Sequence record: MG752970.1
Length of the DNA: 64,000 bases
Reading direction: 5' to 3' (one strand)
Shown here: piece by piece, positions 3,366 to 10,826 of the stretch
Position numbering within the stretch: the stretch's first letter is position 1
How the letters are laid out: the number at the start of each line of letters is the position of its first letter
Notes under the pieces: model-generated
What the model was told of the DNA's origin: nothing
The model's input: only the letters and a program-made list of their open reading frames with translations
The model's database searches: none
Made by a program: the position numbers and the translations under genes

Positions 3366-3623
3366 ATGAACGCAAAGAAAGCAAAGCAACTACGCCGTAT
3401 GGCCCGTGAAGTAGCGCAAGCAGCTCAATTACCTGAAGGCGCCGTATACGATGAAAAGGAATATTTAGTTCCTAACATGCAGAAGTTTATGACCATGACT
3501 GAGCGGGAAGCAGAAGATCGTGCTAGAGTTACGGCACGCGATATTTCAGATGTACACGTCACCCGTACTCTGAATGCAGATTGCGAACGCGCTCTATATC
3601 AGCGCCTGAAAGCCGCTGTTTGA
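3366..3623 (+). CDS. Small basic hypothetical protein
   Basis: 85 aa ORF abutting upstream stop, followed by terminator. Confidence 0.75.
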   Translation: MNAKKAKQLRRMAREVAQAAQLPEGAVYDEKEYLVPNMQKFMTMTEREAEDRARVTARDISDVHVTRTLNADCERALYQRLKAAV

Positions 3624-3636
3624 TTTTTCTAAGAAT

Positions 3637-3664
3637 ATGGCACCATCCTGTGGTGCCATTCTTT
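3637..3664 (+). terminator. Intrinsic terminator
   Basis: ATGGCACCA-tcctg-TGGTGCCAT then TCTTT. Confidence 0.7.
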
Positions 3665-3679
3665 AAATTAAATCAAACA

Positions 3680-4170
3680 TCCGTTTCGCTGCCTTTGTCA
3701 GGATGCTAGTCACGAAACGATTCAAGTGAGTTCTTGAATGTAAAGATGGTTCATCGAACATATCGATGACGCTGAATAACCCAGTTACAAAATATAACAA
3801 AGAATTCAGGGAGCCGATCCAGTCAAACGGAGCCCCCTTGGTAGAGTAGCAGCCCTATGGTTATTGTAGAAGTTGCAGATGCTATCAAAAACAATCGAGC
3901 AAGCTAGAGACGGTTCTTGATATGGCGCAATGCTTAAAATGATGGTTGAATGTCCGTTACCATCAATGCTCGTATACTAAAACTCAAGTATATAAAATAT
4001 TCCAGATCAGCAAATACAGATTTTGCTGGATAACTAAATCGTTAATGGTTGCGATTTAGTGAAGATCGGCGTCAACGACACCACGCAAGAAGCACAACCG
4101 GTAAAGCGTTACCTGGACGGGTTGAAGAGAAATCTTCTGAAGTGCGAACCATTATTTGAAGCATCCCGAA
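3680..4170 (+). ncRNA. Candidate large structured non-coding RNA (strand not established)
   Basis: No credible ORF; many hairpins (3720-3739, 3751-3769, 3940-3965, 4008-4028, 4033-4060, 4095-4124, 4124-4137 with GAAA loop) and nested long-range complements 3701-3707/4160-4166 and 3746-3752/4146-4152. Confidence 0.4.
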
Positions 4171-4763
4171 TTTTTTGCGCCGAGGCAGGCGCTCTGGTGT
4201 TCCCCAATCGTCTTACGATTAAGATCGTAATCATTAAGAAGAAACAAAAATTCCCCATGACGATCATTGCAAGAACGAACGCCAGTGAGTGATGCAATGA
4301 GACGTCGAGCAAGCGACAGCTGCTCTGATCTAGTCGACTAGATCAATATTGTAGGAAGAAGTCACAAACCAAAGAATGAAATATACATGAGTTTGGACCT
4401 GCATTAAATAGAAATACATCCTGGCAGTACTTTAATGGAAACTGACTTAACTCACCAGTTTCCATTATTTTTGCGCCGGATCCGGCCAAATAGGCAAAAG
4501 GAGCGGCAAGAAGACACCGCTCAGCTATCGATCATGGCCGCTCACTGGCGTTCGCTTCCATTCCGAAGCTTGTGGGTTCTATCTGTCTATATTGGCAGCT
4601 GATACCCATCTGATCTATCTGGTGCATCTCCGTTCATTCCTGTCTCGAATTGACACATACCACATCATCCGTCTGACCCAATTCATCTGGACACCTCTGG
4701 AGAGGCCATGCCCAGTTGTTCAGAACTAGAAACTCGTTCCGGATCCTAAGATTTAGATAAGAG
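4170..4763. other. Palindrome/hairpin-rich non-coding element, origin-like or RNA switch
   Basis: 20-bp perfect palindrome 4326-4345, 12-bp stem 4433-4467, 14-nt complement 4276-4289/4541-4554, direct repeat TTTTTGCGCCG at 4172 and 4468. Confidence 0.5.
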
Positions 4764-4787
4764 AAAAGGAGCCTTTCGGCTCCTTTT
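4764..4787 (-). terminator. Intrinsic terminator for the gp26-like unit
   Basis: Minus strand AAAAGGAGCC-GAAA-GGCTCCTTTT, overlapping stop of the -1 frame extension. Confidence 0.85.
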
Positions 4788-5034
4788 ACAGTGATGCAAC
4801 CAGCTTTTCCATCCATGTCTTTCCTTTTATGATACCTTCTCGTTTCTTAGTTAGAAACTCAACGGCTAGTTCTCTTTCTGCAGCTGACATCATTAAGACG
4901 TCTTCGTATTTTAAGGAACCTTTTGAATAAAAGGAAATTTCTAGAGCACTCTTGATTAGATTTTCCGTATCCTTTGCAAAATAGCTGATTGTTCTCGTGA
5001 TTAGATGATAATCACGAGACCGTATTACTCGGAA
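4786..5034 (-). CDS. -1 frame extension of gp26-like chaperone (82 aa, missed by ORF track)
   Basis: Open -1 frame after T9 run: FRVIRSRDY...ISFYSKGSLKYEDVLMMSAAERE...LVASL*, no Met in its first 47 codons; ends in a terminator. Confidence 0.7.
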   Translation of the reverse strand, partial: FRVIRSRDYHLITRTISYFAKDTENLIKSALEISFYSKGSLKYEDVLMMSAAERELAVEFLTKKREGIIKGKTWMEKLVASL

Positions 5035-5825
5035 AAAAAAACTATCGGGTTGGTTGGGAGATCAACTTGGAATGGCTGTCCACAATCCTTGCAAGTCAAT
5101 GTGACTTGCTGCTGAGTTCCCCACGCTGAGGCGTTTTCAATGGCTGAACCAATCAAATTCACATCCTTGGTGCTCAGATATCTAGCCCATTCACCAATCA
5201 TTGCCTTATCTGTGACGTTGTCCACAGAGTATATGATTGAGCATAGATTTTTTAGAATGTTGTCTTGAATATCTTCAACACTGGTTTCAGAATCTAATCC
5301 ACCTTGAGCTGAACGCTGCATTAGCTCTACTAGATTCTTATAACGTAGTGGCTCAAGCTTTACACTCTGACCGGTACTAATTGTCACGGTTGACTGCTCG
5401 TTGATTGTGGTTGGATCTAATTCGCGAATGTTCTTTACGAACTCATCAAGATCTACTTCGTAAGAATGTGATTCGGCTTTCTCACAATTATGCTCTGCGT
5501 CGACAGAAAATTTTGAACCGTACGTTGCAACTCTTAGGAAGACCATCAGTGCATCAACATCTTTACCAAATAGTTCATTAGGTTTCTTGATGTCTGGAAT
5601 GCACTCTGCGAAGACTTCATCGATTGCTCTACCAGAGAACAACATGTCGATGTTCTTGAGTTTAATTTCCGCTATAGCCGAAAGTGGATGAACGTGGACT
5701 TCGCCATTTGCTACGTTAGGTCCTAGTTCACCGTTTTGATACAAGTGGCCACCAGATGGAAGCTTGAACACTCGTCCAGGTAGTTTAATTTTTGCTAGGA
5801 GGGGGTTTGTAATTGCTGAATCCAT
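5025..5825 (-). CDS. gp26: gp26-like baseplate hub / tail assembly chaperone
   Basis: LPSGGHLY N-terminus, VFLRVATYG, internal HNC and C-terminal CKDC zinc-like motif; adjacent to tape measure. Confidence 0.75.
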   Translation of the reverse strand: MDSAITNPLLAKIKLPGRVFKLPSGGHLYQNGELGPNVANGEVHVHPLSAIAEIKLKNIDMLFSGRAIDEVFAECIPDIKKPNELFGKDVDALMVFLRVATYGSKFSVDAEHNCEKAESHSYEVDLDEFVKNIRELDPTTINEQSTVTISTGQSVKLEPLRYKNLVELMQRSAQGGLDSETSVEDIQDNILKNLCSIIYSVDNVTDKAMIGEWARYLSTKDVNLIGSAIENASAWGTQQQVTLTCKDCGQPFQVDLPTNPIVFFSE

Positions 5826-5855
5826 GGATTCTCCGATTTCTTATAAGATATGAGC

Positions 5856-5885
5856 TATTTATCAGGAACTAAAAGCTCATAAATA
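5856..5885. promoter_or_regulatory. Divergent late promoter pair
   Basis: ATAAATA on minus (5856-5862) and plus (5879-5885), within inverted repeat ATGAGCT/AGCTCAT. Confidence 0.7.
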
Positions 5886-5912
5886 TTAGGTAATCCATCT
5901 TGAAGAGACGCT

Positions 5913-8470: not shown

Positions 8471-8965
8471 TCAGTGTGCGGCATTCTTGATGATCGTGGC
8501 AGCTTGAACTACAAGATCGGTAAAGATCGGTACTCCACTGATAAGTTGCATCGCAGCGCACTCAAGGACTACACAGCCAGCAAACAAGAGAATGCCGGTA
8601 CCATCATTTTCTTCAGGATCAAGATCAAATAGAGTATCAACGATGGTGGATTGACACACGGTGACCGTGAACAAAGCGAGTACTACAACGATCACCATTT
8701 GAAACAGGAACAATCCACCTTCATGTACACTCTGAATTGCCGAAAAAAGTGCCACGATGCTGATGCCGCCGCCGAGGATTGCGATAGCAGCCTTGATGCT
8801 GAAAACTGCAGCATATAGACCGGCGCCATTTTGAATCCGGCGGCTTTTTGCGTAGGCATAGCTGGGAATCCAGAAGAGGATGACAGCAAAGAAGCAAAAG
8901 AACAGAACTGCTTTCACCAACTCCCAGATTCTCTGAATCAGTGTTTCCGGTACATTGTAGTACAT
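8471..8965 (-). CDS. Multi-pass membrane protein
   Basis: About 4 hydrophobic segments; GAGGT RBS before ATG at 8965. Confidence 0.7.
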   Translation of the reverse strand: MYYNVPETLIQRIWELVKAVLFFCFFAVILFWIPSYAYAKSRRIQNGAGLYAAVFSIKAAIAILGGGISIVALFSAIQSVHEGGLFLFQMVIVVVLALFTVTVCQSTIVDTLFDLDPEENDGTGILLFAGCVVLECAAMQLISGVPIFTDLVVQAATIIKNAAH

Positions 8966-8998
8966 GATCGAATACCTCATAAAACTGTTTATGGTTTC

Positions 8999-9027
8999 AT
9001 TATAACACATTTTCTGAGACTTCTAAA
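8999..9027 (-). promoter_or_regulatory. Sigma70-type early promoter
   Basis: TTTAGA-17 nt-TATAAT with TG extended -10. Confidence 0.55.
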
Positions 9028-9058
9028 AACCGTTACAATTTTGTCCGGTTTTACACTA

Positions 9059-9065
9059 ATAAATA
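9059..9065 (+). promoter_or_regulatory. Late promoter box ATAAATA
   Basis: Upstream of portal gene. Confidence 0.7.
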
Positions 9066-9101
9066 GAAAGCTTAAGATCTTAGGATAGGAAATCGGGTTC
9101 A

Positions 9102-10826
9102 ATGGGAACACTCACGAATTACTACCGAATAGTCCAACCAGCGTCACCGAAACAAGCATACACTACAACAGATAATGAGCTTGTTTCACGCTATCAGAAC
9201 TATTCATGGTACAACGCTGTCGTAAAGTCAGCATCTACAAGACTCGCACGTTACAAACAATATGAGATGATGGATCGTGACGTGGATATTTCACGTGCAC
9301 TTGATACCATTTCTGAAGAAATGTCTACGGTGGATGAAAAGACGCATCTACCATTTCTCATCTCATATCAGAATGACGATAACGTAGAGGTTAACGAACG
9401 CTTGGTCATGACGATCAAGGCTGCCCTCCGTCATTGGTGTGATCTTCAGGATTTATACAATAGAATTTTCAGAACATGTCGCACCACCGCGAAGATGGGA
9501 GATTGCTTCTTTAGAAAAACAAGCGACCATCGTAAGTGGGAATATATCGATCCATCACTCATTTATGGTGTTGAGATGGATGAAAAAGGTGTGATCATTG
9601 CATATCATGTCAGAATGCTTGGTGCTTCTGGTACCGGTAATTCAACAGAACAAATGCAAATCATTCCGGCTGAAGGAATGATTCACTTTACGTTATCTGA
9701 TGACATGTCATCCATTGCTCCATTTGGTGATTCATTGCTTGAACCGGTTGTGAAGGTATTCAAGCAGATGACTCTACTTGAGGATGCAGTAGTTATCTAT
9801 CGTATCGTAAGAGCACCAGAACGTCGTGTATTTTACCTCGATGTAGGTGGAATGCCTCCTCACAAGGTTAAGGCGTATCTAGAATCGGTCAAGACTGAAA
9901 TGTATCAGAAACGTTTCGCCAATGAAATGGGTGGTGAAGCACAGGTTGACTCCGCATACAATCCTCAATCAATGACTCAAGACTTCTTCATGGCCACAAC
10001 GTCTGAAGGTCGTGGTACAAAGATTGAAACTCTACCAGCTGGTGAGCAGCTTGGTGAAATTACAGATCTTACATACTTCCAAAACCGCGTTGCACGCGGT
10101 CTCCGTGTTCCTACATCATACTTGAACTCTCAAGGCCAAGGGTCAGGTCAATACACTGATGGTAAGGTTGGTATCGCATACATTGAAGAACTTCGATTTG
10201 CAAACTTCGTTAAGCGTCTGCAAAACAAGGTTGAGAAGGTTTATGATCGCCAGTTCAAGGCGTATCTAGATGCATCTGGTATCAAGATTGATCATAATCT
10301 GTTTAAGCTGCAGTTACCAGAACCACAAAACTTTGCATTGTACCGTCAAGCAGCTATTGATGCTGAGCTCATCAATACGTTCAATACCGCTGAAAACATT
10401 CAGTATCTATCCAAGAGATACATTCTCAAGAGATTCCTTGGATTCACTGAAGATGATATTCAAACAAATGAAGCGATGCTACGTCAAGAGCGCAACATTC
10501 CAGACACGACTAACTTGGATGATCCTCCAATTACTGACATTCAACTCATGTACGATCCAGCAATTTACAGCGATCGTAAGGTGGATGTTCCGTCATTCGG
10601 TGGAGGAGGTGGCGGAGCTAGTGGATTCGGTGGAGGAGGAATGGATTTAGGTTCATCTCCATCTGACCTTGGTTTAGAAGAACCGGGTGGTGAGGGTGGT
10701 GCGGGTAAACCAGAGGGAGAAGCTCCTGAAGGTGGAGAATCACCAGAAGCTCCAACAGATACTGGTCCTGAGCTAGAAGCACCTGCAGCGCCAGAACCTG
10801 CTCCAGAAGCTCCACCACCAGTGTAA
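9102..10826 (+). CDS. gp20: Portal protein
   Basis: EDAVVIYRIVRAPERRVFYLDVGGMP, QDFFM, GTKIETLPAG, VPTSYL, EELRFANFV motifs of T4 gp20; acidic Gly/Pro tail. Confidence 0.96.
   Translation: MGTLTNYYRIVQPASPKQAYTTTDNELVSRYQNYSWYNAVVKSASTRLARYKQYEMMDRDVDISRALDTISEEMSTVDEKTHLPFLISYQNDDNVEVNERLVMTIKAALRHWCDLQDLYNRIFRTCRTTAKMGDCFFRKTSDHRKWEYIDPSLIYGVEMDEKGVIIAYHVRMLGASGTGNSTEQMQIIPAEGMIHFTLSDDMSSIAPFGDSLLEPVVKVFKQMTLLEDAVVIYRIVRAPERRVFYLDVGGMPPHKVKAYLESVKTEMYQKRFANEMGGEAQVDSAYNPQSMTQDFFMATTSEGRGTKIETLPAGEQLGEITDLTYFQNRVARGLRVPTSYLNSQGQGSGQYTDGKVGIAYIEELRFANFVKRLQNKVEKVYDRQFKAYLDASGIKIDHNLFKLQLPEPQNFALYRQAAIDAELINTFNTAENIQYLSKRYILKRFLGFTEDDIQTNEAMLRQERNIPDTTNLDDPPITDIQLMYDPAIYSDRKVDVPSFGGGGGGASGFGGGGMDLGSSPSDLGLEEPGGEGGAGKPEGEAPEGGESPEAPTDTGPELEAPAAPEPAPEAPPPV

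Follow-up and report, generated by a model that had tools for sequence, protein, structure and literature searches.

What occupies the 1401-nucleotide (nt) unannotated gap (3624-5024) that separates gene 374 from the baseplate-hub gene 375 in the record annotation of Ralstonia phage RsoM2USA (MG752970.1, 343.8 kb)? We addressed this question in a window of 64,000 nt of that genome (window position = record position - 248000), where a first-pass annotation had picked out an element of about 490 nt at 3680-4170 and likened it to a large phage non-coding RNA (ncRNA). The block is very likely the gene for a large, pseudoknotted, structured ncRNA, read from the + strand and representing a new family in RsoM2USA-like jumbo myophages. 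It is conserved more strongly than the genes that flank it, and at least nine of its helices, including a long-range helix (P1) that closes the domain, are maintained by compensatory changes, in agreement with the earlier proposal of a multi-stem RNA closed by long-range pairing.

Near relatives were found by sequencing-run look-ups in soil, plant and wastewater samples, and two further lineages, L015-L018 and L025-L029, were retrieved via homologues of protein 374; both have a gene order identical to that of the window and a gap equal in size. Over the core (3745-4204) the window is 93.7% identical to L025 and 97.0% identical to L015, compared with 73.7% and 87.4% in gene 373, 67.0% and 76.2% in gene 374, and 73.2% and 87.0% in the hub gene. 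Conservation above that of neighbouring coding DNA (93.7-97.0% versus 67-87%) is a general mark of structured ncRNA genes. At the 5' side, a single base differs across three lineages in 3660-3690, and the adjoining end of gene 374 diverges. In an 80-kb soil contig that is about 95% identical, substitutions in gene 374 fall at every third base (32 in 280 nt), and those in 3648-4026 are rare (8 among those listed). The RNA leader also holds a split of its own: over 3660-3744, L027-L029 are 86% identical to the window and L025/L026 71%, although these two sets are otherwise near-identical, a pattern that suggests recombination within the 5' region of the RNA.

The same comparison speaks to coding capacity. 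Because a suppressor transfer RNA (tRNA-CUA) is present in the phage (PMC8504454), we also considered reading frames under reassigned stop codons. With TAG as a sense codon, 3660-4450 contains no open reading frame (ORF) of at least 90 codons, and the frames that open when TGA or TAA is read as sense are contradicted by the non-periodic substitutions.

Hub proteins of about 50% identity are common in metagenomes, and through hub-protein relatives we retrieved L032 (370 kb), L033 (356 kb) and 80 loci from JGI. In L032, L033, L034, L039 and L117, the interval that separates the hub gene from the small-protein gene holds a recognisable homologue of the RNA. A covariance model of 3997-4158 (R1) matched L033, L034 and L039, in each case with the strand and location that gene order predicts, and a rebuilt model (R2) gave E values of 1e-22 to 1e-27 for L033, L034, L039/L116 and L117, with weak matches in L032 and L101; L116, which is the same sequence as L039, and L117 came from IMG/VR by means of a degenerate core motif. 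The reach of nhmmer from the close group was limited to L033, L034 and L039, and IMG/VR scans with the hub protein, the 374 protein and two exact 19-20-mers yielded nothing useful, L031 being a chance match. A weak R2 match in L070 was discarded as it lies inside the PDDEXK gene, and a screen of the 80 loci for ORF-free gaps was too crude to inform. The L101 match (425-589, - strand), on a 330-kb contig, is a weak but plausible copy of the core of the 3' domain (GGGTAAAGCAGTACCT...), located about 4 kb away across the hub gene; judging from this case, the RNA may occupy another locus in some relatives.

These homologues reveal extensive covariation. In a seven-sequence alignment, 21 of the 29 pairs of the 3' domain have compensatory changes, and 94.9% of its cells are paired, against 73.6% in shuffles (none of 500 equalled the observed value) and 29-46% with slid partners. 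Among the short-form homologues, in which the 5' peripheral domain is smaller than in the window, 22 of 72 predicted pairs are compensatory. The stems of HA, HB and HD have entirely different sequences in each lineage. HD, the GAAA-capped stem at 4124-4137 that the first-pass annotation had recognised, recurs in homologues as five other complementary stems (GACC/GGTC, GAA/TTC, GGA/TCC, GGATC/GATCC and GGAC/GTCC). Hairpins L and M each take five different complementary forms, with the L loop remaining AAATGTCCATAT-like, and HE appears as GCGCC-GCAA-GGCGC, GCGCC-GAAA-GGCGC and GCGCT-GAAT-AGCGC. Even between the window and L025, the hairpin at 4259-4306 differs by four compensatory pairs (CATTGCA/TGCAATG to CGATGTA/TACATCG, and GACG/CGTC to GATG/CATC) around an unchanged loop. 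Minimum free energy (MFE) and centroid folds of 3680-4170 alike contain at least ten hairpins with A-rich linkers, which accommodates the original count of at least eight.

Two nested long-range complements had been proposed to close the domain, and relatives distinguish between them. The outer one, P1, exists in six versions, every one of which is complementary: GGATGCT/AGCATCC, GGGTATC/GATACCC and GGATATC/GATATCC in the close group, so that three or four of the 7 bp are changed on both sides between strands about 450-460 nt apart, and AGTAATTT/AAATTGCT, TCAGAAA/TTTCTGA and AGTGG/TCACT in the short forms. RNAduplex did not detect P1 in the short forms, where it was spotted by eye and afterwards verified. 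The inner complement (ATGGTTC 3746-3752/GAACCAT 4146-4152) is present in the window but unsupported as a helix by relatives, since L025-L029 have a mismatched C-A within it and L034, L039 and L117 lack its 5' strand. We read 4147-4154 instead as a pseudoknot strand because it is complementary to the loop of HB, with covariation. The pairing exists in two or three versions: TAATGGTT with AACCATTA for the window, TTTTGGTT with AACCAAAA for L034, with two compensatory positions relative to the window, and TTTGGTT with AACCAAA for L033 and L039; L039 lengthens both strands by extra bases that are still complementary (TTGTTTGGTT/AACCAAAACAA). From these few independent events, a loop-tail pseudoknot, 4043-4050/4147-4154, probably takes the place of the second nested helix.

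A further long complement lies outside the core. The invariant 21-nt loop of the 4259-4306 hairpin contains one strand of a perfect 14-nt complement (CGAACGCCAGTGAG/CTCACTGGCGTTCG, 4276-4289 versus 4541-4554) to a conserved island situated 250 nt downstream of the loop and beyond the candidate terminator, and relatives retain the complement with one bulged base. This could be a long-range pairing formed under read-through, or the same motif carried on an opposite-strand transcript.

The strand from which the RNA is read is indicated by the kind of imperfect pair that is tolerated. G-U cells outnumber A-C cells by 12 to 2 in the 3' domain and by 26 to 3 in the short forms, which favours the + strand. 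In the close group many one-sided changes likewise give G-U pairs on the + strand, among them the L025 changes in hairpin 5a. When RNAalifold was applied to 3660-4480 with the close group only, the two strands could not be told apart (9 versus 10 compensatory pairs).

The core of the RNA is 466 nt long (3701-4166) and closed by P1. The element as a whole is longer than the 490 nt or so first proposed: conserved structure extends beyond 4170, with homology and covarying hairpins to about 4350, and the 3' extension has GAGCGACAGC and a purine-rich run in common with the short forms. The whole RNA is probably about 650-800 nt long, with its end near 4350 or at the hairpin of 4433-4472, which is preserved in relatives despite an A>G change and an inserted C. 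The upstream limit of the element is the terminator of gene 374, whose stem is kept and whose loop is variable in relatives, and in the short-form homologues, too, the element begins immediately downstream of the terminator that ends the homologous small gene. Of the two convergent terminators between which the element had been placed, this one directly abuts it, but the other lies about 600 nt past the end then assigned. Between the two, conservation within the gap is lowest at 4476-4763, where the window and L025 are 62% identical, with insertions and deletions. This segment has a terminator-like site at 4522-4501 (- strand) and could be a small unit of its own on that strand or no more than spacer.

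Coordinates of the RNA, its parts and its neighbours (window positions, except for the XacN1-type RNAs, which are given in their own loci)
Feature	Position	Strand	Sequence or remark	Basis
Gene 374	3366-3623	+	small basic protein	record annotation
Intrinsic terminator hairpin of gene 374	3637-3659	+	10-bp stem, then T-rich tail	terminator scan
Conserved leader and 5' arm of hairpin 5a	3660-3700	+	TCTTTAAATTAAATCAAACATCC...	conservation, G-U changes
Hairpin 5a	3682-3688/3713-3719	+	CGTTTCG/CGAAACG; loop holds 5' strand of P1	
P1, 5' strand	3701-3707	+	GGATGCT; pairs with 4160-4166	
5' peripheral domain	3708-3895	+		folds; one-sided changes keeping G-U pairs
5' domain hairpin	3720-3739	+	ATTCAAG/CTTGAAT	folds
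5' domain hairpin	3751-3769	+	TCATCGA/TCGATGA	folds
5' domain hairpins	~3808-3838, ~3840-3885	+	A-rich linkers between	folds
Central domain	3896-3993	+	helix J, hairpins L and M	
Helix J	3896-3901/3967-3972	+	CGAGCA/TGCTCG; CCGAG/CTCGG in short forms	
Hairpin L	3941-3946/3959-3964	+	GATGGT/ACCATC; conserved loop TGAATGTCCGTT	covariation
Hairpin M	3973-3978/3987-3992	+	TATACT/AGTATA	covariation
3' domain, most conserved part	3996-4158	+		covariance models R1 and R2; covariation
HA	4008-4014/4022-4028	+		stem sequence differs wholly per lineage
HB	4033-4042/4051-4060	+		stem sequence differs wholly per lineage
Pseudoknot, loop strand (HB loop)	4043-4050	+	TAATGGTT; pairs with 4147-4154	
HC	4098-4104/4109-4116	+	CCGGTAAAGCGTTACCTGG; in 3' domain	
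HD, GAAA-capped stem	4124-4128/4133-4137	+	GAAGA-GAAA-TCTTC	stem sequence differs wholly per lineage
Conserved tail of 3' domain		+	CTGAAGTGCGAACCA	
Pseudoknot, tail strand	4147-4154	+	AACCATTA; overlaps GAACCAT; pairs with 4043-4050	
P1, 3' strand	4160-4166	+	AGCATCC; pairs with 3701-3707	
HE	4177-4192	+	GCGCC-GAGGCA-GGCGC; no T run after	kept in homologues
3' extension	4205-4350	+		covarying hairpins, shared motifs
Hairpin(s) of 3' extension	4207-4228	+	ATCGT/ACGAT	
Hairpin with invariant loop	4259-4306	+	GACG..CATTGCA/TGCAATG..CGTC; invariant 21-nt loop 4272-4292	covariation
Hairpin of 3' extension	4307-4325	+	GAGCA/TGCTC	
Palindrome of 3' extension	4326-4345	+		
Terminator-like hairpin, candidate RNA 3' end	4433-4472	+	TAATGGAAACTG/CAGTTTCCATTA, then TTTTT	perfect 12-bp inverted repeat
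Terminator after hub gene	4787-4764	-		terminator scan
Gene 375, baseplate hub	5825-5025	-		record annotation
XacN1-type RNA, XacN1 (L002)	8949-9452			
XacN1-type RNA, Xoo-sp13 (L003)	9007-9501			
XacN1-type RNA, RAS14 (L004)	8973-9546			

RNA libraries bear on the question of transcription. Contigs from three of them fall only within 3659-4351 of the 1.8 kb compared, although they are directionless and DNA carry-over is possible. A root-metatranscriptome contig is 98% identical over 4049-4295, and one wastewater RNA-library contig extends past its own phage's terminator hairpin into upstream sequence. These contigs are compatible with an abundant RNA made by read-through.

Several points weigh against our interpretation. 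The pairing counts come from only about seven independent lineages, in alignments fitted by a model or by RNAalifold, which inflates them. Folding is only marginally better than that of shuffled controls (z-score -1.83 on the + strand, with 5 of 100 shuffles equally stable, and -2.57 on the - strand), and a z-score of about -1.8 on the proposed strand is weak evidence. No sigma-70-like promoter was recognised upstream of the RNA, and past the terminator no promoter motif recurred above chance level. The RNA-library contigs are directionless and may be DNA, and for the divergent wastewater relatives flanking genes could not have aligned at 80% identity. The functional part of our proposal is drawn by analogy only, and our confidence in any specific function for the RNA would be much lower than in the existence of a structured RNA.

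The genes around the gap belong to two modules. On the + strand side upstream are an SbcC-like gene, a PDDEXK nuclease gene (372) and two genes without known function (373 and 374); downstream are the hub, tape-measure-like and portal genes. Protein 374 has an N-terminal helix rich in arginine and lysine. Its family comprises widespread small basic phage proteins with an N-terminal MNxKxAKxLRKxA and a C-terminal (R/K)G(I/V)YxxLKK motif (window 3366-3623, L033 9305-9526, L032 9222-9407 and about 20 more loci), and within the jumbo-phage clade it occurs both with and without the RNA; in all lineages the gene 374 homologues have their own stop codon and terminator before the RNA. For protein 373 (213 residues) there was neither a Pfam nor a PHROG match, and its Atlas neighbours score 0.81-0.82, which is chance level, including an IS605 OrfB helix-turn-helix cluster at rank 19; Atlas similarity searches with proteins 373 and 374 gave no lead to function.

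Some smaller features of the module deserve mention. Free-standing GIY-YIG (and NUMOD3) homing-endonuclease genes occur at points that differ by relative (L033 8023-8628, L028 2091-2828), and the GIY-YIG/NUMOD3 gene of L033 has as its immediate neighbours the hub gene on one side and the RNA on the other. Past the hub stop codon a 35-residue ORF on the - strand (4786-4893) extends to the terminator; with TAG as sense a - strand frame is open across 4786-5061, and relatives have a separate gene of about 61 residues at that place. The motif ATAAATA, which resembles the T4 late-promoter core TATAAATA, precedes both divergent genes, hub and 376 (window 5826-5912), and no motif of this type stands before the RNA.

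RsoM2USA has one copy of the RNA. Against 50,697 phage records the sole blastn match was the phage itself, the RNA is not detectable in the phages XacN1, Xoo-sp13 and RAS14, and none of 185,579 bacterial and archaeal genomes contains the core motif. The RNA is phage-specific, and its carriers are RsoM2USA-like jumbo myophages from soil, roots and wastewater. Not all phages of this gene order carry it: in L035, L036 and L052 the order of hub, small gene, 373 and PDDEXK is kept with a spacing too short for the RNA, and one 351-kb contig (P0035) has three genes where the RNA would sit. Its absence from close relatives that share the gene order indicates that the RNA probably has an accessory role, in infection fitness, host takeover or counter-defence, and not one essential for replication or assembly.

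It is plausible that transcription would start just past the gene 374 terminator, or reach the RNA by read-through of it, and would end near 4350 or at the T-run hairpin of 4433-4472. The product would be a free-standing RNA whose compact tertiary fold displays the invariant single-stranded motifs (GGUAAAGC...ACCUGG, CUGAAGUGYGAA and the 4272-4292 loop), which could bind to a partner of host or phage origin, or act on it, during infection. The RNA might self-assemble like ROOL and GOLLD, or it might be catalytic.

A catalytic role is a matter of mechanism alone and would not conflict with the existence of the RNA: the pseudoknotted core and its invariant junctions would form a catalytic centre for self-processing or another reaction. 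Features usual in large ribozymes are present, namely invariant single-stranded joints, a GNRA-capped stem, peripheral hairpins that can be swapped and a pseudoknot, and sequence constraint is very high. However, no Rfam ribozyme or intron model matches at E<=10, neither a flanking split gene nor a conserved cleavage site was seen, and non-catalytic ornate RNAs fit the same architecture; we regard a ribozyme as unlikely. That the block holds no functional element, being made of decayed genes or of chance hairpins in a spacer, has next to no credence with us. It could draw on the marginal folding z-score and on the absence from RsoM2USA of three genes that XacN1-like phages have downstream of the hub. 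Yet tblastn of the hub-downstream genes of XacN1, Xoo-sp13 and RAS14 found no remnant in the gap, the block covaries, and the gap is the best-conserved DNA of its neighbourhood, far better conserved than the adjacent genes, which excludes decaying genes or neutral spacer.

Two further alternatives tie the block to its neighbours, and both suffer from its accessory distribution, which argues against an essential origin and against an RNA-guided module. It seems very unlikely that the block acts in cis in DNA replication, as a primer RNA or R-loop transcript (in the manner of ColE1 RNA II or the T4 origin transcripts) or as a DNA origin where the recombination module joins the structural one. 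The position is suggestive, because the block adjoins the SbcC-like gene and the PDDEXK nuclease gene at a meeting point of convergent transcription units, and T4 origin E is situated among baseplate genes. Tandem repeats and iterons were not found, however, GC content runs from 0.39 to 0.47 with no AT-rich dip, and the G-U-tolerant long-range and pseudoknot covariation indicates an RNA and not a DNA site; moreover, an essential origin would not be lost from relatives that keep the gene order. We give scarcely any weight to a guide or scaffold RNA working with the PDDEXK nuclease 372, protein 373 and the small basic protein 374. The order PDDEXK, 373-like gene, small basic gene and RNA is constant in all RNA-bearing loci, and the basic helix of protein 374 would suit an RNA-protein module, but L035, L036 and L052 have the three genes in that order without the RNA, and the small gene occurs without it in many more. 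Protein 373, with its chance-level Atlas scores, is far shorter than TnpB, and the neighbouring proteins have no Pfam match to TnpB or RuvC that would point to a TnpB/IscB omega-RNA.

Having weighed these alternatives, we return to a free-standing structured RNA, for which the XacN1-like phages, a sister lineage, offer a parallel. These phages have a structured RNA of their own, about 500 nt long, in a 500-800-nt gap between the hub-downstream genes and a helicase gene. It is closed by a long-range helix (AAACCCCCCG/CGGGGGGTTT) and has GAAA-capped stems, and between XacN1 and RAS14 several of its hairpins are fully compensatory (for example, ACGGACA/TGTCCGT versus GCATAAAG/CTTATGC). The XacN1-type loci have no Rfam match, at gathering scores or at E<=10, and to our knowledge this RNA has not been described so far. 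It resembles the RsoM2USA RNA in being large, covarying, closed over long range and located in a gene-free gap downstream of the hub cluster of a jumbo phage; it differs in being co-directional with the hub gene and in adjoining the helicase gene. The two have only short motifs in common (AACGACACC and TGACCGAAAGGT), and model R2, run with filters off, found no match in the XacN1-type block; therefore we do not claim homology.

The sister lineage thus has a different large RNA at an analogous place. On a bolder but doubtful reading, which we put forward tentatively, the RsoM2USA RNA might found a new class of giant phage RNAs with pseudoknots, in which the invariant core acts by itself, by catalysis or by assembling into an RNA-only particle like those of ROOL and GOLLD; together with the unrelated XacN1-type RNA it might mark a recurrent "large-RNA slot" beside the baseplate-hub genes of this jumbo-phage clade. 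This RNA class is directly testable, since phage and host are cultivable, the core is defined, a pseudoknot is present and both short and long forms occur naturally. More broadly, the apparently empty gaps in jumbo-phage annotation can contain the most conserved elements of a genome.

How, then, does this RNA compare with those already known? We know of only about a dozen classes of complex bacterial or phage ncRNA longer than about 400 nt, which makes them rare. Nearly all such large RNA classes have proved to be ribozymes, ribonucleoprotein cores or, lately, self-assembling RNA cages. At gathering scores, cmscan against Rfam found no match in the window, and at E<=10 the region 3400-5100 gave chance matches to unrelated families only; as the first-pass annotation had held, the element cannot be assigned to GOLLD or ROOL, neither of whose models matches even at E<=10. 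We found no paper describing this RNA, and the description of RsoM2USA mentions no non-coding or intergenic elements; it is a new, previously undescribed family of large ornate phage/bacterial RNA. With group I introns and large ribozymes it shares a conserved pseudoknotted core and variable peripheral stems, and the free-standing GIY-YIG/NUMOD3 gene beside the RNA in L033 is a further likeness to group I introns. Unlike group I and group II introns, it has no Rfam intron match, interrupts no gene and has no ORF continuing downstream. GOLLD often adjoins tRNA genes in phages, whereas ARAGORN found no tRNA gene in the 64-kb window. The carriers also differ, being jumbo myophages that infect Proteobacteria and not Firmicutes or rumen phages. 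ROOL and GOLLD, which are common in phages and prophages, form RNA-only multimers, as seen by cryo-electron microscopy (PMC12286853). Like them, the RsoM2USA RNA is about 500-800 nt long, phage-borne, patchy in distribution and apparently accessory, with no evident protein partner, and it arranges many hairpins and GNRA loops around a conserved core.
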